From NCBI RefSeq assembly GCF_041956535.1, contig NW_027192217.1:348797-412796 (forward strand): DNA of 64,000 nt. Direction: 5' to 3'. The DNA is from Calcarisporiella thermophila CBS 279.70. Taxonomy: Eukaryota > Fungi > Calcarisporiellomycota. Below, piece after piece: positions 5,817 to 64,000 of this stretch. The notes below the pieces were generated by a model. That model was not told the origin of the DNA. It saw only the letters and a list, made by a program, of their open reading frames with translations, and searched no databases. Within the stretch, counting starts at the first letter, position 1; every line of letters begins with the position of its first letter. Position numbers and translations under genes: made by a program.

Positions 5817-6326
5817 TTTTTTTTCTCTAAGGACGCGGGAACTTGCGTTCTGTGGTTTATTCGATATATATTACAAATGTGAGATATGCTTCCGAACAAG
5901 CTTATTAAGTACTACAAAAACATGGGATATAATTTAAAGAGATCTGTGCTTGGAAATGTCGGGTTAGGTGTTCTTTGCTTCCTCGAAATCGAGGGCTACC
6001 TCTTGGCAGTCATCGATCTGGATTAGCGAGCTCTTTCCCCATTTTTGCTTGAACCCTTCTTCGTCTTTTTTCCTCTGTGCCTGTATCCATTGTCCTTTGA
6101 TTGCTATGAGAAGATCTGATAAAAAGATACACTTGAATGCGATGTCCTCGTGTTCTTAGTTGTCCATTACAATTGCAATCCTGGTCTTATGTATACTCCA
6201 CACCATGATGTCGTGTAACAACATGGAGACTTGTCGATCTTTGCCCTGTGTCTCCTCGTGGAATCCGAAGAGTTTCTCGTAATTTTGCATGTTTGTCCAG
6301 GGCTTATCGAGGATCTTTTGATGGAG
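5817..6326 (-). mobile_element. 5'-truncated L1/Tx1-type LINE, family A, 3' end
   Basis: Near-identical reverse complement of 13123-13637 (ORF2 C-terminus, 3' UTR, AATAAA, poly-A). Confidence 0.9.
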
Positions 6327-6401
6327 ATCGCGCTTCCTGAATATCTATGTGGCTGCTTATATGACTTCCCCGTACAAAAAACAATTTTCTCGTAACCCGG
6401 T

Positions 6402-6600
6402 TGTTACGGGGGATTAGAGATTTTGTGGAGAAATGTACGGACTAGTTAAAAATAGGAGATTGGTGAGGAACAATAAGTAAATGTGGATGGGTTTATATAA
6501 GTCAAAAAAAAATATTATACGTAAAAATAAGAAAAATAACGAAATCGAAAAGATATTAAGAATGTCGAGACCGCTGTTGTACGTGTTGTGATATTACACT
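6402..6600 (-). mobile_element. Possible LTR relic
   Basis: Ends CCCGTAACA on the minus strand; patchy similarity to 13830-13959 (TATA region and terminus); far boundary unclear. Confidence 0.35.
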
Positions 6601-6668
6601 ATATTTGTCATGATACTCGTGAATATTGAACTTGCACCCTACGCTACACTCATACTACGCTCTCGAAT

Positions 6669-7507
6669 TTTTTTTTTTTGATCAATCAACGGAAAGTTTT
6701 ATTAGTTTCCGTAGCTTACAAGAGTTTAATGATTACAATGAAAAAAGAAAGGGGGGAATAAAGGGGTGGGGATATATTTAGGCGGCAAGGTGGAACTTTT
6801 TTTTGATTTTGACAATATATGTTAGCCCAGAAAGAGGGAGAAGAGAAGAAGGTAAAGAAACGCAAGGGGGTAAGAACATAGCGAAGGTGATAAACGTGGA
6901 GTAAGGGAATAAAGAGTAGATTAAATGTGTATAGTGATCGGGTATTTGGTGAGGGATATGAAGTAAAGAGGAGGGGAGGAGCTAAAGAGTGGATAGGGAG
7001 TAGAGAAGAAGGCAAAGAAACGCAAGGGGGTAAGAACATAGCGAAGGTGATAAACGTGGAGTAAGGGAATAAAGGGTAGATTAAATGTATATAGTGATCG
7101 GGTATTTGGTGAGGGATATGAAGTAAAGAGGAGGGGAGGAGCTAAAGAGTGGATAGGGAGAGAGAAAGGGTTGCTTCGTCACTCCAGTTTTAGTTTTGCT
7201 CTATCCGAACTTTCCATTACCGCTCCCTGACTGCACCACCTTCTTCGGGATAACTCCATCTCTCGTCTTTTTCGTGCATTTATCAGTTCACCTCCGATAG
7301 CCTCCTCGATGTCCATTTTGGCACGGACGATGATTGTCTCGGGTGGTGCTCAAGTGCATTCGAAATGGTAGGCGATTCGGTCCCGATGGATTTGCCATAA
7401 CACCGAATCAAAGACGATTTGAGCCGCGTGTCTTACTGTCCTTGGGGCTTCTGGTAGGTCGCCAAGTACGAGATTCCTGGGGTTCAGCACCCGTGTGTTT
7501 AAGGGGC
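6669..7507 (-). mobile_element. 5'-truncated L1/Tx1-type LINE, family B
   Basis: Reverse complement of 11580-12106; poly-A tail; 15-bp TSD ACTACGCTCTCGAAT at 6654-6668 and 7508-7522. Confidence 0.9.
6854..7166. repeat. ~160-bp tandem duplication in the LINE-B 3' UTR
   Basis: AAAGAAACGCAAGGGGGTAAG...GGATAGGGAG unit starts at 6854 and again at 7014. Confidence 0.9.
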
Positions 7508-7524
7508 ACTACGCTCTCGAATAC

Positions 7525-7861
7525 TTTTTTTTTATCAATCAATGGAAACTTTTTATTTAATTTCCATATATTACATGAAGTTAATGTCAATGGACTTAAC
7601 ATGACGAGATATAGGTCCTTGATCGATAGGCGTTCAATCGATATGCGTGTATCATAGTTATCGTGAATAGCATGTACGTGAAACCGATGTAATCTTTGTA
7701 TTTATCGTAGGAGCGATCTTTTCAATAATGAAGACTCAATTTCTGATCAAGTGGACAGCAGCCACAAACTAAGAGTAAGTGCTGGTGGGGGAAGTGGGAT
7801 TCGAACCCACGCCGTTCTCATCGGCACACCAGGGATAGTCCACTACACTAACCCTCCCCCC
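7525..7861 (-). mobile_element. tRNA-derived SINE, family 1 (full length)
   Basis: Head with A box TAGTGTAGTGG and B box GGTTCGAATCC, unique body, AATAAA and poly-A; TSD GCTCTCGAATAC at 7513-7524 and 7866-7877; other copies at 16651-16741 and 17421-17768. Confidence 0.9.
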
Positions 7862-7929
7862 TCATGCTCTCGAATACTTTGTGACTGTCAAAGTGGTTTG
7901 CTCGTATGAAAAATTAATTTTCTAGTAAC

Positions 7930-8177
7930 TGTCATAAACTAGAGCGATATAACTAGGGGATACTCGGGGAACATAGGTAAAACTCTAGGTTTATTCAAGA
8001 ACAAGGTGTGTATGTTGGAAGTTCTCATTAGAGTGCTCCTTTTATAATATAAGATATAATAACTATATAACCTGTTAACTAATAAAGCTAATGAATACTG
8101 GTTTATAACTACTTCCTAATTAATGTCGGAGCTTGAATATCGTTGGGATAGCTTGATATGTGACTCGAGTTATGACA
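7930..8177 (+). mobile_element. Solo LTR 1 (248 bp)
   Basis: TG...CA ends with inverted termini TGTCATAAACTAGAG / CTCGAGTTATGACA; 4-bp TSD TAAC on both sides; TATA-like at ~8043, AATAAA at 8081. Confidence 0.75.
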
Positions 8178-8181
8178 TAAC

Positions 8182-8424
8182 TGTTAGAATCTGCGTAGTA
8201 CATGCGAGGATAGTTAAGATAATTACTGGTTTATTAAACAAGAATACTATCTGGAACTTAGGATGTCTCCCTTTACTATAGCGGGAGTTCTGTTCAATAT
8301 ATACTAAAAGAATTACATTACAACGATTACTTAATAATGCTCCGATAATGCTCCGAAATAGCAGGGCTTGAGGGATTACGTGGCTTAGTTGTCCTACTGC
8401 AGATATCTCGATACGATTCCAACA
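8182..8424 (-). mobile_element. Solo LTR 2 (243 bp), 15 bp upstream of tRNA-Gly
   Basis: Inverted termini TGTTAGAATC / GATTCCAACA (9/10); TSD TAAC at 8178-8181 and 8425-8428; TATA-like and AATAAA on the minus strand. Confidence 0.72.
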
Positions 8425-8439
8425 TAACACGGTAACAAA

Positions 8440-8510
8440 GCAACTGTGGTCTAGTGGTAGAATTTCACCCTCCCAAGGTGGAGACCCGGGTTCGATTCCC
8501 GGCAGTTGCA
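8440..8510 (+). tRNA. tRNA-Gly(CCC)
   Basis: Acceptor GCAACTG/CAGTTGC, anticodon loop CTCCCAA, T-loop TTCGATT, downstream T-run. Confidence 0.95.
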
Positions 8511-8810
8511 ATGGTGATTCTAAGAACATCAAATTTTTAAAATTTATCCCGATGGCGTATTTTTTTCAGACTAGGGATCTATTCTTCTTTGGTATTAGAA
8601 AATTAAGAAAAATTGATAGTGCATAAAAGTAGGTTAGGTTAGATAATGTGGGCAATTTTCGCCTCCTATTGTTCTTAGCTTTCGCTCTCCGTTAATCAGT
8701 TGATCATAATCGATTTTTAATTTTTTTTCTTGATTCTGATCTATACAGAAATCCTCTAATTAACATACTACTCAATTCTTCGTATTGCGCATATATCTTT
8801 GTTTTCTCGA

Positions 8811-10832
8811 ATGCCATCAACGAATCCAAGCATTCCAGTACCAACTAGTTCCGATTCTTCCAATAATGTAACACGTCACGCTCCCCACGAATCCATTTCA
8901 TCTTACACGCTGCCTGCATACCTTCAAAATACAATGTATGCTGCTTTACAGCCTACTTCCTCTACAGCAGTAGAATCCACACATTCGATTACCAAAGAAG
9001 GAGGTGGAGATTGCGAATGGAGATTGCCAACAGCTTGGAACCCGAAAGAGAAATGTCAGCTACTGGATTTGTCGAGAGATTGCCTTAGAGTGTCTTACAA
9101 AGGCAGTTATTCTACCTGTTACATTAATTTCTTTGGAATATATGGAATATTGATTTAATTTTAATCTTAATAGGATGCGGCAAAGAAGATCAAGATGCTG
9201 CAGCGGTTCGTGCGAATTACTCGATGCCATCACAGTGTGGATTGTTTTATTATGAGGTCGAGATATTAAGCAAAGGACGAGATGGATATATAGGAATAGG
9301 TTTTTGTACAGGGAATGTAAAACTTGATCGCTTACCTGGTAATATAATTTTATTGGTTTTTTGGGCTCACTATTGAGGATCCCATTGATAATTATGAATA
9401 ACCTATATTATCATAAAGGCTGGGAACCAAATTCGTGGGGTTATCACGGAGATGACGGCTGTTCATTTAATTCGTCTGGCCAAGGTAGAAAATACGGCCC
9501 TTGCTTTACTACGGGCGACATCATTGGCTGTGGTGTAAACTTTATGGATAATACCGCATTCTACACGAAAAACGGGGTGCATCTTGGTAACTTCAGGGCA
9601 TATACCTGAGCAAAGAAGGATTTTTTTTCAATTTATCTATTTCTTATTTTATAGGGATTGCGTTTAAAAATCTTTCCAATTCCCCGTTATTCCCTTCTGT
9701 GGGGCTGCGCACTCCAGGAGAGCTTGTGGAAGCAAATTTTGGACAACGTGCTTTTCGCTTTGATATCCTCAATTTTTACAATGAAGAGCGCAAACGTCTA
9801 TGGAGAACTATCAATGCGTTTCCATATCCATATCTTTCCGCAAGTCCTTCGACACCTGCTGCCCCTACTTCAGGTGGAAGTTCAGAGGGTGAGAAGGACC
9901 GAAATCGAGGAGATAGTGATGAGAAATTAATGACAACTCTCAATGAACTGGTGGTCTCATATCTGGTGCATCGTGGCTACACTGAGACAGTGCACGCTTT
10001 TTCACGTCATGTTCCGTCCACTATGACCCTTGATACTTCCAAAACAAAAAAGTTGAACGGCTCTAATGCAACTGGAGACGTGGAAATGCTACCAGTTGGA
10101 AAGCATGATAAGAGCTGGCTCGAGGACGAAGAAGATATGCACCATCGCCAGCAGATTTGGAATTCTATTGTACACAAGGGAGATATAGATGCTGCGATTG
10201 AGCTTGCGTTACAGCATTATCCTTCTGTGTTTTCACAAGATAATCTGATACTTTTTCGACTAAGACGCCAAAAATTTATAGAGATGATGAGAGCATATTC
10301 TGCTAGTCGGCATGGAATGGACCTCGAGGAGGAAGAAAGTGGCAGAGAACAAGACGGAGCAGCTGCCGATTTATTGGAGGAGGACGTGGAAGGGATCAGA
10401 AATGGAATGGAGGAAACTCAAAGTGGAGATGATGCAATGGAGGTGGATGAGGGTGGTAGAGTCATGAAGAGAAATCTTGCCTTTCGCGGACTTGTGGGCG
10501 GAATTCGGAACGTGATGCAATATGGACAACGTCTCCAAGATATGTATGCAGATGATCCACGCCCTGAGGTCCGCGATGGCCTCATAGAGGCTTTTGGATT
10601 ACTTGCATATACAGACCCGTTTCAAAGCCCCATGGCTTATCTTCTCGCTCGTACTGAGAGAGAACCAGTAGCCAATGCTCTAAATTGTGCTATTTTAGTA
10701 TCACGAGGCGCACCTGCTACCACTCCTCTGGAGCGATGTTTTCGGCACGCTAGTAGTGTTGCACGGGAACTGGTGCGAATTGGACATGGCAGTGCAGCGT
10801 TCCTTAACGTGGAGAAAGATTGTCTAGTTTGA
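8811..10832 (+). CDS. RanBP9/10 (Gid1/Vid30-like) CTLH/GID complex subunit: SPRY-LisH-CTLH-CRA, 4 exons
   Basis: [41 protein letters not shown], Lis[25 protein letters not shown]. Confidence 0.9.
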
Positions 10833-11093
10833 AGTTCGATTTTTATTTTTGCTATGGACCCTTTTTTTATTTTATAATTTGTTGTGATATATCTCTGTTT
10901 TTATTGTCGATTTTTTTCACATATTATTTAGTTTTCTTTGGATGTATTGCGATAAAAAGGGAGCATCAAATATGTACTGCACCGTTTTTCACTCTAAAGC
11001 TTTTCTTTTTTTATTTACTCTTATGGCAAGAATATATTATGGTTAGGATATCTATTAATATAATGTCAATCAGTAAATAGGTAGCAAAAAAGT

Positions 11094-11165
11094 CTCTCCG
11101 GCCGGGAATTGAACCCGGGTCGCCCGCGTGACAGGCGGGAATACTAACCACTATACTACCGAAGA
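11094..11165 (-). tRNA. tRNA-Asp(GTC)
   Basis: TCTTCGGTAGTATAGTGGTTAGTATTCCCGCCTGTCACGCGGGCGACCCGGGTTCAATTCCCGGCCGGAGAG cloverleaf followed by a T-run. Confidence 0.95.
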
Positions 11166-11257
11166 TTCATTATGTTTTTGTAATGTGGAATTAGGGATTC
11201 GTGGTGAAAACAGTAAGCTCGCATTCGAGTCCGAGGACAGAAAAAAAAAAAAAACGG

Positions 11258-12106
11258 GGGGAAGGCACTTCCAGCGAAATGGCTCTCCGGAACCAGAAAC
11301 GCTGACGCCCCAATCCTGGCCAGAGGTTGCATCCACGGCAAAGGAATGGGAAAAGGTCTGGACCTCCATCCAAAAACGGCCAACCCTCCCAAAACACCCC
11401 ACACTACGCTGGCGAATCCTCGTAGAGCGTGTAATTACAAACTCGACATTCCCTGGTCATGACCCGAAATGTACCCGCTGTAACGCTCCGAGGGACACAA
11501 TCCGGCACACCTTCTTCGAATGTCCCGAACTCACTTCAGTGTGGCATTGGACGGAAAGGTGTATCAACACCATCTCAGGCCCCTAAACACTCAGGTGCTG
11601 AGCCCCAGGAACCTCGTACTTGGCGACCTACCAGAAGCCCCAAGGACAGTAAGACACGCGGCTCAAATCGTCTTTGATTCGGTGTTATGGCAAATCCATC
11701 GGGACCGAATCGCCTACCATTTCGAATGCACTTGAGCACCACCCGAGACAATCATCGTCCGTGCCAAAATGGACATCGAGGAGGCTATCGGAGGTGAACT
11801 GATAAATGCACGAAAAAGACGAGAGATGGAGTTATCCCGAAGAAGGTGGTGCAGTCAGGGAGCGGTAATGGAAAGTTCGGATAGAGCAAAACTAAAACTG
11901 GAGTGACGAAGCAACCCTTTCTCTCTCCCAATCCGCTCTTTCCCTCCTCCCCTCCTCATTACTTCATACCTTTCACCAAATACCCGATCACTATATACAT
12001 CTAATTTACCCTTTATTCCCCCCCTTTTCTTATTTCATTGTAATCATTAAACTCTTGTAAGCTACGGAAACTAATAAAAGTCTCTATTGATTGATCAAAA
12101 AAAAAA
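11258..12106 (+). mobile_element. 5'-truncated L1/Tx1-type LINE, family B
   Basis: zf-RVT motif CTRC...TIRHTFFEC; pyrimidine-rich 3' UTR; poly-A; TSD GAGGAC(A-rich)CGG at 11233-11257 and 12107-12123. Confidence 0.9.
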
Positions 12107-12123
12107 GAGGACAAAAAAAACGG

Positions 12124-13637
12124 AGAAGTCTCCTGGAACAACCAAAGGGCTTTAGTCTGGGATTAATTGACCCGAAACACCAATGTACAGCCATCCTTGC
12201 CTCCTGGATCCAAAGAATCCACAATGCGCAAAGAGAACGCATACCGCCGCCATGGTACCACTTAGCCATCCATATTCTTACGAAACACTACATCCCAAAC
12301 CAGTTAGGCCTAGGAATCCTCACAACCGACTACGGCATGCAGAAGCTGATGAGAAGAGGTGGCATCTGGCCAAGCATATACCATGCGTGGCGGAAGCTGG
12401 ATGGGCAGCTAGATATCGACAGAAGAATTACGCCAATGGAAGACTTGACCCTACCGATCAATAGGAACAAATACTTCCTCGAGAGAGGACAACCACTGCA
12501 AACTCGTGGAGAACAACATGGGCTCTCGGTCCTGGGTAACTTCTTCATATACCATCAGAATATCAATAGATATAGGCCATTCTACGATCCTGATCTACTG
12601 GACTACGTGGTGAGGTTTATCCACGTCAAACACCAGGAAGGATTTTACAAACATTATATCAAGCTCAGTACAATGTGGCGACTGGGTCAGCTGACCCTGG
12701 CCCCAAATCTTTGGGAAGCGCTCTCCTATAGGATGCCGGCCTTCACAGACTCGAGAATATTCCCCACCCATAACCTGAAATTAGGTGGTGTCAATATCAA
12801 GCTCTACTCTATCAAGTTCGGCAGACTATACCAGATATCACCAGATCCAGTTGCGGTAACTAGAGAATGGGCGCACATTACCTCATATGAAGGAGCGTGG
12901 AGAAGAGCCTGGAAGAGCTGGCCAAGACGCCCAAGCGAACCAAAGCAAAAGATCCTTCGATGGCGACTCCTTCAACATAAGTTAATAACAACAAGAATTG
13001 CCCAACACTTCGACCACTCAAGCCCCAACTGCAAGAGATGTCGACGAGAAGAGATAGAGACGATAGAACATGCCTTCTTTGAATGTGCGAGAATTGGAGA
13101 TCTGTGGAGGTGGTTTAACAGGCTCCATCAAAAAGATCTTCGATAAGCCCTGGACAAACATGCAAAATTACGAGAAACTCTTCGGATTCCACGAGGAGAC
13201 ACAGGGCAAAGATCGACAAGTCTCCATGTTGTTACACGACATCATGGTGTGGAGTATACATAAGACCAGGATCGCAATTGTAATGGACAACCAAGAACAC
13301 GAGGACATCGCATTCAAGTGTATCTTTTTATCAGATCTTCTCATAGCAATCAAAGGACAATGGATACAGGCACAGAGGAAAAAAGACGAAGAAGGGTTCA
13401 AGCAAAAATGGGGAAAGAGCTCGCTAATCCAGATCGATGACTGCCAAGAGGTAGCCCTCGATTTCGAGGAAGCAAAGAACACCTAACCCGACGTTTCCAA
13501 GCACAGATCTCTTTAAATTATATCCCATGTTTTTGTAGTACTTAATAAGCTTGTTCGGAAGCATATCTCACATTTGTAATATATATCGAATAAACCACAG
13601 GACGCAAGTTCCCGCGTCCTTAGAGGAGAAAAAAAAA
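12124..13637 (+). mobile_element. 5'-truncated L1/Tx1-type LINE, family A (ORF2 C-terminal half, one frameshift)
   Basis: zf-RVT CKRC...ETIEHAFFEC; extra A near 13130 relative to the 6.3-kb copy; AATAAA, terminal hairpin, poly-A. Confidence 0.9.
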
Positions 13638-13639
13638 CA

Positions 13640-13959
13640 GGAAGCACTATATCTTTCAAGTAGGGCAGCCAATAGAATTGATTGTCTCCACGTTGTCGCC
13701 CACTTGGTTACCTGTTATCCCCTCATGGTTACCCTAGGAACCCTCATGGCTACCTTGTTGATGTTGATTGATAATTTGTTGTCTTATCTATCTCATTTTT
13801 GAACACCAGTGAGAGTTATTCTCCTTTGTTCACAATCCTATTTAAACCCTTCGGTCTATTTTAATGTTCTATACCAATTCCCTGAATTATTAAGATAAAC
13901 CTCTTATATTTCTCAAGATTCGGACACCCCTTCACACAAATCTCCTTTCGCCCGTAACA
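13640..13959 (+). mobile_element. Possible LTR relic
   Basis: TATTTAAA at ~13840, ends CCCGTAACA; similar to 6402-6500 in reverse complement; no clear TG start. Confidence 0.35.
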
Positions 13960-14019
13960 ATCGGAGTTGAGCATTTAGTGTATTTAAGATAATTTTTTTC
14001 GAATTTTCGTGCAAACCTA

Positions 14020-15312
14020 CTGTACGCAACTGGACGGCAACCGAGACCTTGTCGCTACTTCTCTACAGATGCCCCTTAATCATAGATTGAGACGGGATCC
14101 GACAGATTGAGGAGCCAAAACCTCCAACACCGCCGTACCTACTTAACGAGATACTAACGTTTGTCCGCTGGGGCAGAAAAATTGAGTACAGATCGCTTCA
14201 TAATCAAGCACTATCTGCCAGAAATAGTGGAAGACAATCGGAAATGGAACATAGATCCTCTATGCTCCCTACTAAAAAGCTAAGGAGAGCGTGTTACCGT
14301 AGATACTGCGACCGCTCTCTTGGATAGGACCTCAGGTTTCTCAACCTACCCCCGATCTTAGTTGCAAAAGTCACAGAATACACTGACATACCGCGGCAAC
14401 ATCCTCACCCCTCGTCTCCCACTCTACCATTGCCATCTGGCCGGTAGGCCCGTCGCGGAATACTCCACTCGACAAGATCGTCACTCCCAGCGCAACAGCT
14501 CTCTAGAACCGAATACACTGGTTCCGCGATCCTGGCCCGAGGTTGGATCAACACCTAAGGATTGGGAGAAAGTCTGGATCTCCGTTCACTAACGACCCAC
14601 CCTCCCATAACACCGTGCGTTACGCTGGCAGATTCTTGTAGAACGAGTAATCACTAACTCTACATTCCCTGGTCACGATCCAAAGTGTACCCATTGCAAC
14701 ACTTCGAGGGACACAATTCGTCATACCTTTTTTTAATGTCCTGAACTTACGCCAGTGTGGCAATGGGTGGAGAGGTGTATCATCACCATCACAAGCCCCC
14801 AGAATTCTCAAGTGCTGACTGCTCGCAACCTTATATTAGGAGGTCTATCTGAATCCTCACGAACAGCAAAACACGGGGCTCAAATCACCTTTGATTCGGT
14901 ACTGTGGGAAATCTATTGGGATCATAGTGCCTTTCATTTTGAAAGCACCTGAGCCTCATCCGAAAATATCATCAATCGGGCCAAGATGTTGAGGAGGCTA
15001 TAGGAGCCGAACTAACAAGAGCCTGAAAAAAGCGACAAATTGAACAGTTTCGAAGCAAGTGGTGCAAATTGGGCGCGGTGAAAGAAGGAACTAATAGAGC
15101 GGCTCTAGAACTGGATTAACGCAGTAGCCTACTTCTATCCCTTCTTTTTCTTCCTTTCTTCCTTTCTCACTCCCCATATTACTTATCAAGTCGTTCCCTA
15201 ATACCCAGCTAGTTGAGTTTTATTACACATCTACCCATTTGAGGAGAAAATTCGTTATGATCAACTTACCCCGAATTGCAATACCGCGTTAATATCTAGC
15301 TTTTCCTTATTT
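14020..15312 (+). mobile_element. Decayed LINE, subfamily B'
   Basis: Stop-interrupted homologue of the family B ORF2 end (PRSWPEV, CTHC...RHTFF); 3' UTR matches 62600-62790; left boundary approximate. Confidence 0.8.
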
Positions 15313-15598
15313 ACATGGGATGCTTATAGTAAGACTTGTCGATATTGAAGGTAAGTTTTACCCTCAATTAGCTTCAGATATTTATTAAGCGGCCTCTATA
15401 CTATTGTCTAACAAAGGAAAGTAAAAATTTTATGTCGTTCTTAAGTAGTATAGTGGTTGCAGAGCGTGATCACAGAGCTATATAAATTATAATGCATGAA
15501 ATCCCAAAATATTTGCTTAAGCCTGGAACAAAATGCCAGCTTTTGATACCACAGTTATCTATTCTCTATGGAAAAATTAAATAAATTAAAGAAAAGCA

Positions 15599-15670
15599 CT
15601 CTCCGGCCGGGAATTGAACCCGGGTCGCCCGCGTGACAGGCGGGAATACTAACCACTATACTACCGAAGA
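15599..15670 (-). tRNA. tRNA-Asp(GTC)
   Basis: Identical to 11094-11165. Confidence 0.95.
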
Positions 15671-16105
15671 TTCCTATTGTTGTGAGGAAATTTGGAACTA
15701 AATGGATCAACGGCGCAGTAGTAGAGAATGGAGGCTTAGCTTTTGTGACTTGATCACTTTATTATCTTTATTTCTTTAACTGAGCCCTTTTGTGAGAATA
15801 TTTAATATTATTCGGTTGTTTATTATGCCAACCTTATTTTATGATAACTATATTATATTGAGATGATGCCATTTTATTACTTTTATTATTTATATTTTTC
15901 CCTATGTGATACGTTAACAACAGTATAAAAAGACCGATATTTCATTTACAATAAAAGACGTGCTATTTTGTATTGAGATAGAACCGGATTACGTTTCAAA
16001 CCACCATCTTGTGTCGTTTATTAGTCTTCTGAAGTGTTTAAGGAAGGTTAATCAAGAGCTTAGGGATAGCTAGAGGATTGTCGGGATAGATCTTATTAGA
16101 CATAT

Positions 16106-16741
16106 TTTTTTTTGNNNNNNNNNNNNNNNNNNNNNNNNNNNNNNNNNNNNNNNNNNNNNNNNNNNNNNNNNNNNNNNNNNNNNNNNNNNNNNNNNNNNNN
16201 NNNNNNNNNNNNNNNNNNNNNNNNNNNNNNNNNNNNNNNNNNNNNNNNNNNNNNNNNNNNNNNNNNNNNNNNNNNNNNNNNNNNNNNNNNNNNNNNNNNN
16301 NNNNNNNNNNNNNNNNNNNNNNNNNNNNNNNNNNNNNNNNNNNNNNNNNNNNNNNNNNNNNNNNNNNNNNNNNNNNNNNNNNNNNNNNNNNNNNNNNNNN
16401 NNNNNNNNNNNNNNNNNNNNNNNNNNNNNNNNNNNNNNNNNNNNNNNNNNNNNNNNNNNNNNNNNNNNNNNNNNNNNNNNNNNNNNNNNNNNNNNNNNNN
16501 NNNNNNNNNNNNNNNNNNNNNNNNNNNNNNNNNNNNNNNNNNNNNNNNNNNNNNNNNNNNNNNNNNNNNNNNNNNNNNNNNNNNNNNNNNNNNNNNNNNN
16601 NNNNNNNNNNNNNNNNNNNNNNNNNNNNNNNNNNNNNNNNNNNNNNNNNNAAAGAGTAAGTGCTGGTGGGGGAAGTGGGATTCGAACCCACGCCGTTCTC
16701 ATCGGCATCCCAGGGATAGTCCACTACACTAACCCTCCCCC
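16106..16741 (-). mobile_element. SINE family 1 insertion spanning the assembly gap
   Basis: Head visible at 16651-16741, poly-A at 16106-16113, perfect 17-bp TSD GATCTTATTAGACATAT at 16089-16105 and 16742-16758. Confidence 0.85.
16115..16650. other. Assembly gap (536 N)
   Basis: Run of N. Confidence 1.
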
Positions 16742-16844
16742 GATCTTATTAGACATATATTTGACGCAACAATTGGAGGGGATTCCAAAGTTACTTTTCA
16801 TTGGAAAGTTCGAAGGCAGCCACATTCTGCCAAATACACCAAGG

Positions 16845-17150
16845 CTGCTGGCACAGTGGTTAAGAGTCCCGGGGCTTAACCAATGTGTGCTGGGTTCGAT
16901 TCCCGGCGACGGCACCTGTACTAGAAATGGATCCGGGACATACTCTAGGAATCGAGCTATAAGCTACTTAGTTCTTAATAATTTGATATTGGTCGTTCTC
17001 AGAAAACAAGAAATACGTTTAATATAGTGACTTGTCAGAAGAAATACATGTAAGCAATGGTTGAGCGTTAGAAATAGCGTGCAAATCCTTTCATTTAACT
17101 TGTATAGGAGACTTTTCAATAAAAGATCCTTTAATCTCAAAAAAAAAAAA
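16845..17150 (+). mobile_element. tRNA-derived SINE, family 2
   Basis: A box TGGCACAGTGG, B box GGTTCGATTCC, non-pairing acceptor, tail CTTTTCAATAAAAGAT...A12, TSD AAATACACCAAGG; single copy here. Confidence 0.7.
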
Positions 17151-17186
17151 TACACCAAGGGTGCCCATCAAAAAAAAAAACAAGGG

Positions 17187-17412
17187 CACCCGTCCATGAG
17201 AGTTTGCCGGGTTTTACCAAAGACTCAATCGCTATCAATAGTATAGCAACAAGCAAGTAATATCAAGTGGCTACAAAAATAGGTAGCAAAAATCCTTAGG
17301 AGAAATCCAACCACAAAAATGGAAGGCCAGGAACAGTATCAGGGTGATTTTGACGTAGAAGCCTACCCTTCCATTCCCTTCAGATAAAATCATCAAGTGG
17401 ATGTAAAAAAAA
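17187..17412 (+). mobile_element. Short poly-A-tailed retroelement 3' fragment
   Basis: Bounded by CAAGGG/TACACCAAGGG target copies; carries the shared GGGTGATTTTGACGTAGAAG motif. Confidence 0.55.
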
Positions 17413-17420
17413 TACACCAA

Positions 17421-17768
17421 GGGCGAGGGATGGGTGTAGTGAACTATCCTAGGGATGCCGATTGAAACGGCGTGGGTTCGATTCCCACTTCCCCCACCAG
17501 CACTCACTATTAGATCGTGACTTCTGTCCACCTTGATCAATAGAGTCTCTATCACTGGAAAGATCGCTCCTACGAAAAAGTACACCGATTACATCGATTT
17601 CACGTACGTACTATTCACGACTACACCAATACACGCCTTTCGATTACATGCATATCGATCGCCCGCCTACCGATCAATGACTTATCTCTCGTTATATTAA
17701 GTCCATTAACATTAACTTCATGTAACATGGAAATTAAATAAAAGTTTCCATTGAATGATAAAAAAAAA
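17421..17768 (+). mobile_element. SINE family 1, diverged copy
   Basis: Colinear with the reverse complement of 7525-7861 from head to poly-A. Confidence 0.88.
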
Positions 17769-17784
17769 CTGCCAAAATCACCAA

Positions 17785-18897
17785 ATATGCGAACATTCAC
17801 GAGATCATCAAAGATGGCTTGTACACGAATAATCGGAAAGTTTCGTGTTATAAAACTCTCTCCACTTCCTAGAGAGTGCTAAACGTTAGAATTAACGATC
17901 TCCCTGGACGGTAAGAGGAAATCCTCAGAGAAAAAATCGGAGGCAACCTTACTCAAGTATGCCTGAGTCATCCAGATTGATTTCAATGCTATGGCAACAT
18001 GGGGTGATTAGAAGACCATTGCTACACTATACTTTAAAGGAATCCTGAGACTACGGAACTTTTAGAATATATTCTACCTCGCCAATTAGCAATCGGATGA
18101 CAAAATAATCCTTTCTTCGAAAGGATCTACTCCAGTGAGTAATTATTGTAAGGCTCCTGGTCACATACGCGTAGAATGTCCAAAGAAGAACAGGCAACAT
18201 CAAGAATATAAATCCGTCCAAACATCCACCCCGTCTATTCGTGAAACAACATCACATATAATGAATACAAGTAATGAGACTGAGAAGCCAAAGAAGAAAC
18301 AAGAAGTTACCATCAAAATAACAGTATTCCAAAGGTAATGGCATCTAACCACGAACTTTTAGAATCCAAATATTTAGCGAAATAACCGGATTTGAATTAT
18401 CCGCCAGCTAAGGGGAACCCCGAAATCAAACCGATCAACCTTCAAGAATTTCTAGCTTTCCCAAAAGAACACGAAGTTCGACTTCAGTACCACTAAATCG
18501 CCCACGCGCAACTACCAAACATTTCGGAAAACTATAAGGCAAAGTGCCCCTCTAAGACCCAAGAGCCTCTCTAAGGCAAAAGTTTCCGGTAGTCCCAACG
18601 GAATATGAACTTAGATATCTATTACAATGATAGCATATGCTGTTCTCCCTTAGCACTTCTGCTCTCTTAATATCAAAAGATATGGGTAAACAAAGTAAAT
18701 TTTTCTATTTACATTACACTTTTTATATTCTCAACCATCCTCATCAATTAGCTCTCATAATTTATCTACTTCTTCTCACTTATATACCACTTCAAGGTAG
18801 TCTGGGGGCAGTGCCCAAGAGATTTTGACGTAAAAGTTACCCTACCCTTTTAGCTCTACGGAATACTTTTCAATAAAAGATTTTTTAATAAAAAATA
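17785..18897 (+). mobile_element. Decayed LINE ORF1 (zinc knuckle) followed directly by a 3' tail
   Basis: Stop-riddled frame ending LPRQLAIG...SNYCKAPGHIRVECPKK (CCHC knuckle, first C lost); AATAAA and A-tail at 18872-18897; no RT seen. Confidence 0.6.
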
Positions 18898-18899
18898 AC

Positions 18900-19187
18900 T
18901 AGATAGTTCATTTTCTTTTCTATTTTCTTCTTTCCTCCTATAACTATTTCTATTTTTTTTTTTCTCTTCCTCTTCTCTGTCCTCTCTGCCCTTTCCCTCC
19001 TATCAAAGACTTTGAGCATATCCACATTTTGTTTCTCAGATGTATCATGTTCTCCCAAACCCATCAACACTTTTTTTATACATATCAAAGGTAGGCCGAG
19101 AGCCTGGGTGATTTTGGCGTAGTAGTCTACCCTATCCTCTTAACTACACGAAAATTATTCAATAAAGGGTTCACAGTTAAACAAAAC
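18900..19187 (+). mobile_element. Retroelement 3' UTR fragment
   Basis: Pyrimidine-rich tract, shared structured motif at 19090-19132, AATAAA and decayed A-tail. Confidence 0.45.
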
Positions 19188-62521: not shown

Positions 62522-64000
62522 TTTTTTTTTGATCAAAAGTGAGCCTTTATTGTTTAATAAGACCCTAAAATACAATCGTTACATTATTAAAAGTAATAAA
62601 ATGAGATAAAAGCTAGAAATTAACGCGATATTACAATTCGGGGTAAGTTGATCTTGACAAATTTTCTCCTCAAATGGGTAGATGAGAAATAAAACTCAAC
62701 TAGCAGTGGGTAATAGGGAATGACTTGATAGGTGATATGGAGAGGGAGATATGCAGAAAGAGAAGGGCTAGTAGTAGGGGCTACTGCGTCAGTCCAGTTC
62801 TAGAGCCGCTCTATTAGCTCCTTCTTTCACCGCGCTCATTTTACACCACCTGCTTCGTAACTGTTCAATTCGACGCTTTTTTCGGGCTCTTGTTAATTCG
62901 GCTCCTATAGCCTCCTCAATATCCAGATTGGCCCGATTGATAATGGTTTCGGATGAGGCTCGAGTGTTTTCAAAATGAAAGGCGATTCGGTCCCGATGGA
63001 TTTGCCATAATACCGAATCGAAGACGATTTGAGCCGCGTGTCTTACTGTCCTCGGGGCTTCTGGAAGGTCGCCAAGTACGAGATTCCTTGGGTTCAGCAC
63101 CTGAGTGTTTAGGGGCCTAAGATGGTGTTGATACACCTCTCCGCCCAATGCCACACTGACGTGAGTTCGGGACATTCGAAGAAGGTGTGGCGGATGGTGT
63201 CCCTCGGAGCGTTACAGCGGGTACATTTCGGGTCATGACCAGGGAATGTCGAGTTTGTAATTACACGCTCTACGAGGATTCACCAGCATAGTGTGTGGTG
63301 TTTTGGGAGCGTTTGTATATCAAGATGATTGTCGCTCGTTTGGAGAATAGAAGTGGGGAGTTGGTTGTGAGAGCTTCATTAAAGAGTTCTAGGAGGAAAG
63401 GGGCCAGTTCATCTTCGAAAGCTCTATAGAACTCAGCTGTCAATCCATCGGGGCCAGGCGATTTGTTTCGCGGTGCTTTGCGGATCGCTCTTCTTACTTC
63501 CTCCTCTGTGGTCGGTCGGTCGAGGAGGGTTCGGTGTTCTGGCAATAGAGTGTTTTCAATGTGGCCTAGGAGTTCTTCTTGGTCCGCCGAGGATGTTGGG
63601 CCGGCGGAGTATAGTTCTGTGTAAAAGCGGTTTGTTAGTATGGCCATTTCACTTGGGTCCTCAGTATTTGCTCCGTCTGGCTTTTTGAGTGCCGTCATCG
63701 CGTTGACGGCTCGTCGACCCGCGATTCGGCGGTGGAAGTAGGCTGAGGATTTTTCCCCCGCGTCGGTCCACATTATTCTGGAGCGAATGCGGAGGGTCTC
63801 TGCTTTGCGATTTGTGTGAGTCGCGAGTTGATTACGGAGCTCGTCATTTTGAGAGCGTGATGCTTCCGTGTCTGGGATATTCCCTAGTTGGCGGAGGGCC
63901 CTATGTATGCGTGTCTCCTCTGCCCTGAATCGGCGTTGGCGTTGTGACGCGTATGCTGTTGTGAATTTTTGAAATAACCTTTTGGCCTTGTTCCAGAATT
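62522..64000 (-). mobile_element. Family B LINE with internal deletion of the RT core; runs off the window
   Basis: GEKSSAYF, KSPGPDGLTAEFY, then a jump at ~63310 to the zf-RVT end; 3' UTR and poly-A at 62522-62530. Confidence 0.9.

Follow-up and report, generated by a model that had tools for sequence, protein, structure and literature searches.

In the thermophilic fungus Calcarisporiella thermophila (Mucoromycota), long and short interspersed nuclear elements (LINEs and SINEs) insert approximately 85 bp upstream of transfer RNA (tRNA) genes, with the 5' ends of the elements facing the gene. The stretch of DNA from which this study set out, referred to as the window, comprises 64,000 bp of contig 27 (positions 348797–412796). 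It carries three tRNA genes, beside which LINE and SINE copies lie stacked one behind the other, and all three genes follow one rule: the element 5' ends face the gene at 79, 94 and approximately 87–89 bp (the first and the last of these after subtraction of later insertions). These stacks of elements without long terminal repeats (LTRs) were in all likelihood (approximately 80%) built by repeated insertion at a fixed spot upstream of tRNA genes, the position being chosen via the RNA polymerase III (Pol III) complex or via the DNA or chromatin which this complex shapes.

The assembly of C. thermophila comprises 28.2 Mb in 116 contigs. One protein encoded in the window has 99% identity to VTP21DRAFT_6542 of C. 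thermophila, which identifies the genome as belonging to this species. The counts given below derive from 101 loci on many contigs (L-numbers), i.e. from approximately 300 kb sampled from the 28-Mb genome and not from the whole of it. tRNA genes were called by ARAGORN and Rfam. The names of the families LINE-A and LINE-B were taken over from a first-pass annotation of the window; a third LINE-like family is referred to as family D.

Distance and orientation of the elements

In the element-side test the assembly was searched with SINE1, 40 of 152 candidates were scored, and the 30 best copies were examined together with 1.5-kb flanks. A tRNA gene was found head-to-head, 76–108 bp before the SINE head, in 19 of these 30 copies, and none of the 30 had a tRNA gene in the same orientation at that distance. 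A random site meets the head-to-head condition with p = 0.0009, and 19 of 30 would be reached by chance with a probability of approximately 8e-51; this estimate assumes 1459 tRNA genes, which is a rough candidate count for the genome.

When the proximal SINE1 copies were pooled (28 copies, next to tRNA genes of 21 isoacceptor types), every one was head-to-head with its tRNA gene. The distance to the tRNA 5' end was 87.6 ± 7.2 bp (median 85, range 78–110). The spread was wider when the distance was measured to the tRNA 3' end (standard deviation (SD) 9.1), and long tRNAs (82–86 nt) had the same distance as short ones (89.6 and 87.0 bp, respectively), indicating that the ruler begins at the 5' side of the gene.

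In the tRNA-side test 40 tRNA genes were picked by Rfam score alone, blind to repeats, each with 1.5 kb of upstream and 0.5 kb of downstream sequence. A junction of a repeat with unique or spacer DNA was located at −68 to −104 in 27 of them; 21 of these junctions were read in sequence, and six were seen as the edge of a run of N only. The elements at the 21 sequenced junctions were SINE1, SINE2, three other SINE families, LINE-A, LINE-B and a LINE-B-like family. Another eight genes had LTRs starting 7–17 bp upstream, which displaced older elements; in one such locus (L095), removal of the LTR returned a LINE-B-like junction to approximately 90 bp. The remaining five genes had no element, and two of these had a divergent neighbouring tRNA gene instead. 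Repeats or N runs starting within 500 bp of the tRNA gene were present upstream in 35 of the 40 genes and downstream in five. In L093 and L086, a divergent neighbour tRNA gene was observed 103–205 bp upstream in the place of a retroelement.

The LINEs and the other SINEs showed the same arrangement. Where the 5' junction of a LINE fragment adjoined the spacer, it lay at 94 bp (window), 83 bp (L046), approximately 71 bp (L069), 87 bp (L063), 95 bp (L088, a LINE-A), 77 bp (L087) and 124 bp (L052), and many further LINE fragments were found to follow a proximal SINE, whose orientation they shared. Copies of SINE2 were head-to-head with tRNA genes at 88–102 bp in L077, L089 and L092. Altogether, 105 element pieces shared a locus with a tRNA gene: 89 were upstream and head-to-head, 11 upstream in the same direction, and five downstream. 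The first-pass annotation had called for a genome-wide check for a peak near −80 to −100 bp and for an orientation bias, and both were found, the peak being sharp (SD 7 around the median).

Target sites and growth of the stacks

Target-site duplications were recognized in 32 of 42 SINE1 copies, with a median length of 16.5 bp (range 12–23). The first base of the duplication was A in 19 of the 32 copies, an excess which the poly-A tail partly mimics, and T in eight; there was no other consensus, and neither nick site had a sequence consensus. The spacers between tRNA gene and SINE were unrelated unique sequence in many loci, and in others consisted of the terminal 65–75 bp of LTRs that had been inserted earlier. 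A given LTR was hit by a LINE or SINE insertion only where it adjoined a tRNA gene. The earlier claim that target sequences differ, with distance and orientation as the constants, was thus borne out by unrelated spacers, by the lack of a nick consensus and by the 21 isoacceptor types.

Within a stack, the duplication derived from the spacer was repeated between the members. In the window, three copies of it were present at the tRNA-Gly gene, three or four in the stack at 16.8 kb, and two at tRNA-Asp number 1; the same recurrence was found in L063, L028 and L010. SINE1 copies were approximately 2–5% off their consensus, and the most diverged ones (15–16%) were all displaced outward.

An insertion of only the last 15 nt or so of the LINE-B/SINE tail (TTGATC and an A-run) was found in L010 (positions 1390–1500), with a duplication of its own, between a tRNA-Pro gene and a SINE1. 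It represents a case of extreme 5' truncation at the usual site.

LINE and SINE families

LINE-B is approximately 4.85 kb long, its 5' end being set by where other copies start to match, and has a 5' untranslated region (UTR) of approximately 12 nt. The first open reading frame (ORF1) encodes 207 residues with one CCHC knuckle and a low-complexity tail; no Pfam match was obtained for it, and ESM Atlas gave weak leads to CCHC proteins (scores ≤0.83). The first 83 residues of ORF2 align with residues 8–77 of protein P0256 (39% identity, 8e-16), inside the Exo_endo_phos domain of that protein (8–225), although the direct Pfam match of the ORF2 start to endonuclease was weak (E = 0.032). A match to RVT_1 at 5e-31 was obtained with the reverse transcriptase (RT) piece of a LINE-B-type copy, for which human L1 ORF2p was the closest relative of known structure (1.7e-36, compared to 5e-22 for R2). 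In both LINE-A and LINE-B the C-terminus of ORF2 carries zf-RVT (PF13966, 1e-8), and the two families are 34% identical over the ORF2 end. RT and zf-RVT were found on one element in the annotated protein P0251 and on contig 88. No ribonuclease H (RNase H) domain was found in the readable parts of LINE-A and LINE-B.

An apurinic/apyrimidinic endonuclease (APE), an RT nearest to human L1 ORF2p and zf-RVT together support the assignment of LINE-A and LINE-B to the L1 superfamily of non-LTR retrotransposons. The label 'L1/Tx1-type' given to them in the first-pass annotation holds at the level of this superfamily only, and does not amount to a placement as L1 or as Tx1. The nearest full-length relatives, from a turtle, an alga and metagenomes, have the same APE-RT-zf-RVT architecture at no more than 42% identity. 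For the C-terminal 423 residues of LINE-B, the only matches were to Calcarisporiella proteins. No tRNA gene was found on the four contigs that hold the nearest RT relatives, three of which are barely longer than the element itself.

Within the 3' UTR of the minus-strand LINE-B fragment at 6671–7507 of the window, 160 bp are duplicated in tandem (6835–7154, 98% identical). A comparable break is present in other LINE-B copies near positions 750–761 of the LINE-B query (window 11260–12105), and this region of the 3' UTR may vary in length among copies.

The head of SINE1 was called tRNA-like by ARAGORN. SINE1 also has a LINE-derived 3' tail, a poly-A tail and target-site duplications, and so shows the features of a tRNA-derived SINE. 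Its last 55 nt or so are common to SINE1, SINE3 and LINE-B, and include a GGAAA...TTTCC inverted repeat and ATTGATTGAT(C)An. A tail shared by a LINE and a SINE is a classic sign of SINE mobilisation by LINE machinery, indicating that SINE1 and SINE3 are mobilised in this way. The common tail also upholds the earlier description of the SINEs as passengers. Three or more additional SINE families, whose tRNA-like heads are different, were observed head-to-head approximately 76–100 bp upstream of tRNA genes (L028:1100–1500, L083, L090 and L065). Counting SINE1 and SINE2, there are at least five SINE families in the 28-Mb genome.

Comparison with known systems

The element TRE5-A of Dictyostelium shows the same geometry at approximately 50 bp; contact with TFIIIB is made through its ORF1 protein, and targeting depends on an intact B box (PMC3159450, PMC5911963). 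Like TRE5-A (formerly DRE; L1-type), the LINEs of C. thermophila are non-LTR elements with two ORFs and an APE, and lie upstream of many tRNA genes with no target sequence. Occupied tRNA genes form the majority in both systems, with 61% in D. discoideum (PMC5006619) and at least 27 of the 40 genes sampled in C. thermophila. TRE5-type behaviour is seen in the use of many tRNA types without a motif and in the fixed 5'-facing orientation (89 of 100 upstream pieces), but not in the distance, which is approximately 85 bp in C. thermophila and approximately 50 bp (40–54) for TRE5-A. Unlike TRE5-A, the elements also have a fungal and not an amoebozoan host, tRNA-derived SINE families ride along with them, and their ORF1 is a short CCHC-knuckle protein.

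Other non-LTR lineages aimed independently upstream of tRNA genes are NLTR-B of Polysphondylium pallidum and NLTR-A of Dictyostelium purpureum, showing that the habit evolved more than once (PMC5006619). Unlike the C. thermophila LINEs, NLTR-B and NLTR-A carry an RNase H domain, and they sit at approximately 50 bp and 2–6 bp, respectively. Zorro3, an L1-superfamily LINE of Candida albicans, combines a very short 5' UTR with a zinc-finger ORF1 and targets poly(A) tracts (PMC7175516). LINE-B resembles it in the 5' UTR of approximately 12 nt and in the CCHC ORF1; Zorro3, however, has no tRNA gene preference.

Among fungal LTR retroelements, Ty3 and Ty1 of Saccharomyces and Tj1 of Schizosaccharomyces japonicus use tRNA genes as safe landing sites, and the solo LTRs found at −7 to −17 in C. 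thermophila resemble Ty3 or Tj1 in their behaviour. In contrast to the C. thermophila LINEs, Ty1, Ty3 and Tj1 integrate by means of an integrase, and Ty1 and Ty3 have no fixed head-to-head rule; Ty1 insertions spread over approximately 700 bp in a periodic pattern. The L1 superfamily also includes the LINEs of the Tx1 group, which are likewise associated with Pol III genes (e.g. Dewa in tRNA repeats and Mutsu in 5S genes) but recognise a DNA sequence inside the repeat. No conserved DNA target sequence of this kind was found in C. thermophila, where the target sequence varies and position alone is constant.

The non-LTR elements in a 2018 review of Pol III targeting are all dictyostelid (TRE5, TRE3, NLTR-A and NLTR-B) (PMC5911963), and in a 2016 survey TRE-like elements were not found outside dictyostelids (PMC5006619). 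No fungal case of tRNA-gene-targeted non-LTR elements, and no work on Calcarisporiella repeats, was found in the literature searched, most subscription journals lying outside it. The behaviour described here matches that known from TRE5; what appears to be new is the fungal kingdom, the different distance and the inclusion of SINE families.

LINEs that aim at a safe place without sequence-specific DNA recognition have so far been represented by dictyostelid models only, of which TRE5-A is the principal one. With a second system from another kingdom a real comparison becomes possible, as to the Pol III factor that is read, the way in which the distance is set, and whether the habit is ancient or convergent. 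Proteins of thermophiles are often favourable for structural work. With a thermophilic host, the structure of a LINE protein bound to a Pol III factor and DNA may be attainable.

Proposed mechanism and alternative explanations

In the mechanism proposed here, insertion would take place by target-primed reverse transcription. The LINE endonuclease would nick the tRNA-sense strand approximately 68 bp upstream of the first mature tRNA base, i.e. at the edge of the duplication nearest to the tRNA. The second strand would then be cut approximately 85 bp upstream, at the far edge, producing the 12–23 bp duplication and leaving the 5' end of the element facing the tRNA gene. Both the positions and the order of the nicks are deduced from the geometry of target-primed reverse transcription.

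A LINE-encoded protein would recognise the Pol III transcription complex, or the DNA or chromatin shaped by the complex, with TFIIIB, TFIIIC and Pol III as candidate partners. Guidance by the Pol III complex is suggested by the variable target sequence together with the narrow peak, the strict orientation and a distance set from the tRNA 5' end, and also by the parallel with TRE5-A; by analogy, the link would be a protein tether to the complex. The SINE passengers, which have no protein and land at the same place, prove that the aiming component acts in trans. By landing at this constant distance from the tRNA gene, every new copy would push the older ones outward, and Ty3-like LTR elements landing at −7 to −17 would push whole stacks farther out.

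A more detailed version of this scheme can be put forward tentatively, at slightly less than even odds. It would be a fungal Pol III-directed target-primed reverse transcription of independent, non-TRE origin, with its own ruler (approximately −68/−85), shared by at least two LINE and at least five SINE families, with Ty3-like LTR elements on the same tRNA genes and with SINE heads seeding new landing sites (self-made targets). A SINE head as landing site was seen in a single case among the sampled loci, at 16.8 kb of the window.

Several observations weigh against repeated insertion at a spot defined by the Pol III complex. In L038, a LINE-B fragment is embedded in 1.5 kb of unique sequence that contains no tRNA gene, and in L002 no Pol III gene could be recognised ahead of a SINE1. 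The 5' flank was readable for a single full-length LINE-B (contig 34), and in the 830 bp upstream of this element neither ARAGORN, run with and without introns, nor Rfam at E ≤ 1 detected a tRNA gene. Exactly 83 bp before its 5' end, A-box-like and B-box-like motifs are present (L061:4080–4260, approximately 37379–37560 of contig 34), for which neither ARAGORN nor Rfam made a call. The local alignment score of this tRNA-like remnant was 29, compared to a mean of 25.7 and a maximum of 31 for shuffled sequence. The stretch may represent a Pol III gene that has decayed, or may have no significance at all. If each new copy lands closest to the gene, the youngest copies should be the nearest, and here only a trend was obtained (3.4% versus 4.2% divergence, p = 0.07). 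Four 5S rRNA genes were scored in the genome, and none was near a listed LINE or SINE, the element lists being incomplete. Finally, the counts rest on approximately 100 loci, and the junctions known only from the edge of an N run make up six of the 27. A tandem pair of 5S rRNA genes, at a distance of 408 bp from each other, is located at 280129–280655 of contig 31.

The main rival to contact with a Pol III factor is that the elements read chromatin or DNA shape at active tRNA genes, such as the edge of the first upstream nucleosome or DNA bent by TFIIIB, with no direct contact to any Pol III factor. In yeast Pol III promoters the usual TFIIIB footprint does not reach as far as −68 and −85, and nick sites outside this footprint speak for such a reading of shape. 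The use of nucleosomal DNA upstream of tRNA genes by yeast Ty1 also speaks for it (PMC5911963), and the 7-bp spread is compatible with either model. A strict orientation and one narrow peak with no periodic ladder are, however, more easily produced by a directional protein tether, and the nearest analogue, TRE5-A, uses protein contact (PMC5911963). Shape reading without such contact is therefore considered unlikely. It is far less probable still that the endonuclease simply prefers A-rich tracts, so that new copies land in older poly-A tails and the link to tRNA genes is secondary. Zorro3, which targets poly(A), provides a precedent among fungal L1-type elements (PMC7175516), there is an A-run within the target at tRNA-Asp number 1, and the duplications which start with A (19 of 32) would fit. 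Nevertheless, already the first element of each stack lies at 85 ± 7 bp, only a minority of the spacers and duplications are A-rich, and the duplications between stack members come from the spacer on the tRNA side and not from tails.

Random insertion, followed by selection that spares only the copies in a harmless zone upstream of tRNA genes, would suit a gene-dense genome, in which shared repeats are absent from the 40 kb that separate the two repeat-rich areas of the window. Selection does not, however, account for a peak 7 bp wide, for a fixed orientation, for the near-empty downstream side (5 of 40, compared to 35 of 40 upstream) or for repeated hits on the same base pairs, and is given very little weight. 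The least credible alternative is a sequence-specific endonuclease, comparable to those of Dewa and Mutsu, that reads a motif recurring upstream of tRNA genes. Some spacers are indeed alike, being the same LTR ends, but many are unique and unrelated, and neither nick has a consensus. Moreover, L011 and L013 carry hits at a position of LTR1 at which the copy at 15678–16108 of the window is intact; hits on a given LTR are confined to places beside a tRNA gene.

LTR elements and assembly gaps at the same tRNA genes

Several families of solo LTRs end 7–17 bp upstream of the mature tRNA 5' end. Their termini are TGTTG...CAACA, TGTCATAA...TTATGACA and TGTTAG...CCAACA. The position of these LTRs points to a Ty3- or Tj1-like aiming at the Pol III start site. 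LINE and SINE insertions interrupt tRNA-proximal LTRs at approximately −85, and later LTR insertions push LINE/SINE stacks outward.

Many stacks are broken by N runs, including the interior of the one full-length LINE-B. In many loci (e.g. L070, L076, L081, L082, L084 and L097), an N run was also observed to start 76–95 bp upstream of the tRNA gene, at the place expected for a LINE/SINE junction. Such gaps would be expected from a short-read assembler that breaks at young repeats, and imply that the annotated assembly under-represents LINE and SINE elements. As most tRNA genes bear stacks, the assembly is broken by N runs and many ORF2 fragments are annotated as 'uncharacterized proteins'.

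Element stacks of the window

The tRNA genes and elements of the window are listed in table 1. Minus-strand elements upstream of tRNA-Gly at 5.8–7.9 kb had been reported in the first-pass annotation, and the arrangement was confirmed, with LTR boundaries that agree with block edges against other loci: the SINE1 head is now 577 bp from the gene, and 79 bp after removal of 498 bp of LTRs (7927–8424; the earlier figure was 499). Likewise, the plus-strand elements at 11.3–15.3 kb do lie upstream of minus-strand tRNA-Asp number 1, the 5' junction of the nearest one, a LINE-B, being 94 bp away (approximately 92 in the earlier reading).

The stack at 16.8 kb had been described as starting approximately 103 bp from a SINE head. 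The two heads, of SINE1(−) at 16742 and of SINE2(+) at approximately 16845, indeed face each other, 99–102 bp apart. Before the arrival of LTR1 (15678–16108) and of SINE1(−) with its duplication (16111–16759), the plus-strand stack beginning at 16845 was approximately 87–89 bp from tRNA-Asp number 2.

Table 1. tRNA genes and retroelements of the window, with positions counted from its first base.
Feature	Position	Strand	Remarks
LINE-A 3' fragment, poly-A tail	5817–6326	−	Outermost in the tRNA-Gly stack; 98% inverted match to 13131–13636; library match to LINE-A positions 1000–1512
LINE-B 3' fragment, poly-A tail	6671–7507	−	Flanked by a partial target copy, GCTCTCGAAT, at 6659–6668
SINE1, tRNA-like head, 337 bp, poly-A tail	7526–7862	−	Target-site duplication GCTCTCGAATACT at 7513–7525 and 7866–7878
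Two solo LTRs	~7927–8178 and 8181–8424		Later insertions 11–15 bp upstream of tRNA-Gly; TAAC between and flanking; edges equal block edges in other loci
tRNA-Gly(CCC)	8440–8510	+	ARAGORN and Rfam; target gene of the minus-strand stack
tRNA-Asp(GTC) number 1	11094–11165	−	ARAGORN and Rfam; target gene of the plus-strand stack at 11.3–15.3 kb
LINE-B 3' fragment (ORF2 end with zf-RVT, 3' UTR, poly-A)	11260–12105	+	Target GAGGACA(A)nCGG at 11235–11258 and 12106–12122
LINE-A 3' fragment (ORF2 end with zf-RVT, poly-A)	12124–13636	+	Second of the tRNA-Asp number 1 stack
Older LINE-B-like 3' fragment, ~75% identical to LINE-B	14482–~15250	+	Third of the tRNA-Asp number 1 stack; end approximate
tRNA-Asp(GTC) number 2	15599–15670	−	ARAGORN and Rfam; by reconstruction, original target of the plus-strand stack now starting at 16845; not used in the first-pass annotation
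Solo LTR1, 431 bp	15678–16108		7 bp upstream of tRNA-Asp number 2; 95–97% identical to copies in L039, L073 and L092
SINE1 copy holding an assembly gap	16111–16742	−	17-bp duplication GATCTTATTAGACATAT at 16094–16110 and 16743–16759
SINE2, other tRNA-like head, poly-A tail	16845–17149	+	First of the plus-strand stack; target ATACACCAAGG at 16834–16844, 17150–17160 and 17411–17421
Short 3' fragment of LINE-like family D, poly-A tail	17162–17410	+	Sequence reading
Old SINE1-like copy, ~15% diverged from SINE1 consensus	17421–17769	+	Repeat and library matches
Two more family D fragments, poly-A tails	17780–19180	+	Ends near 18898 and 19180; direct repeat and sequence reading
Loci with solo LTRs ending 7–17 bp upstream of a tRNA gene	7927–8424, 15678–16108		Also L004, L011, L016, L020–L022, L029, L073, L075, L091, L095 and L099

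The assembly gap at 16115–16650 lies inside one minus-strand SINE1, with a T-run (the poly-A tail) just before it and SINE1 positions 3–92 just after. To judge from these flanks, both sides would be continuous through a single SINE1 unless another element is nested inside. Only approximately 245 bp of SINE1 sequence are absent across the gap, compared to 536 N, so that either the N count overestimates the gap or something more is hidden in it.

Non-LTR elements had been described as absent from 19.5–59 kb, and in agreement with this no repeat shared with any of the 101 loci was found between 18.9 and 60.7 kb. From 60747 to the end of the window at 64000, degenerate minus-strand LINE-B-like fragments were observed (LINE pieces at 60.7–63.3 kb), including RT-like pieces and pieces of the zf-RVT region. 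No tRNA gene was found on their 5' side inside the window; the expected target would fall beyond 64000.

The tail of family D resembles that of SINE2. Inside family D, at 18130–18200 of the window and approximately 700 bp from the poly-A end, there is a stretch coding for a CCHC zinc knuckle (CKAPGHIRVEC).

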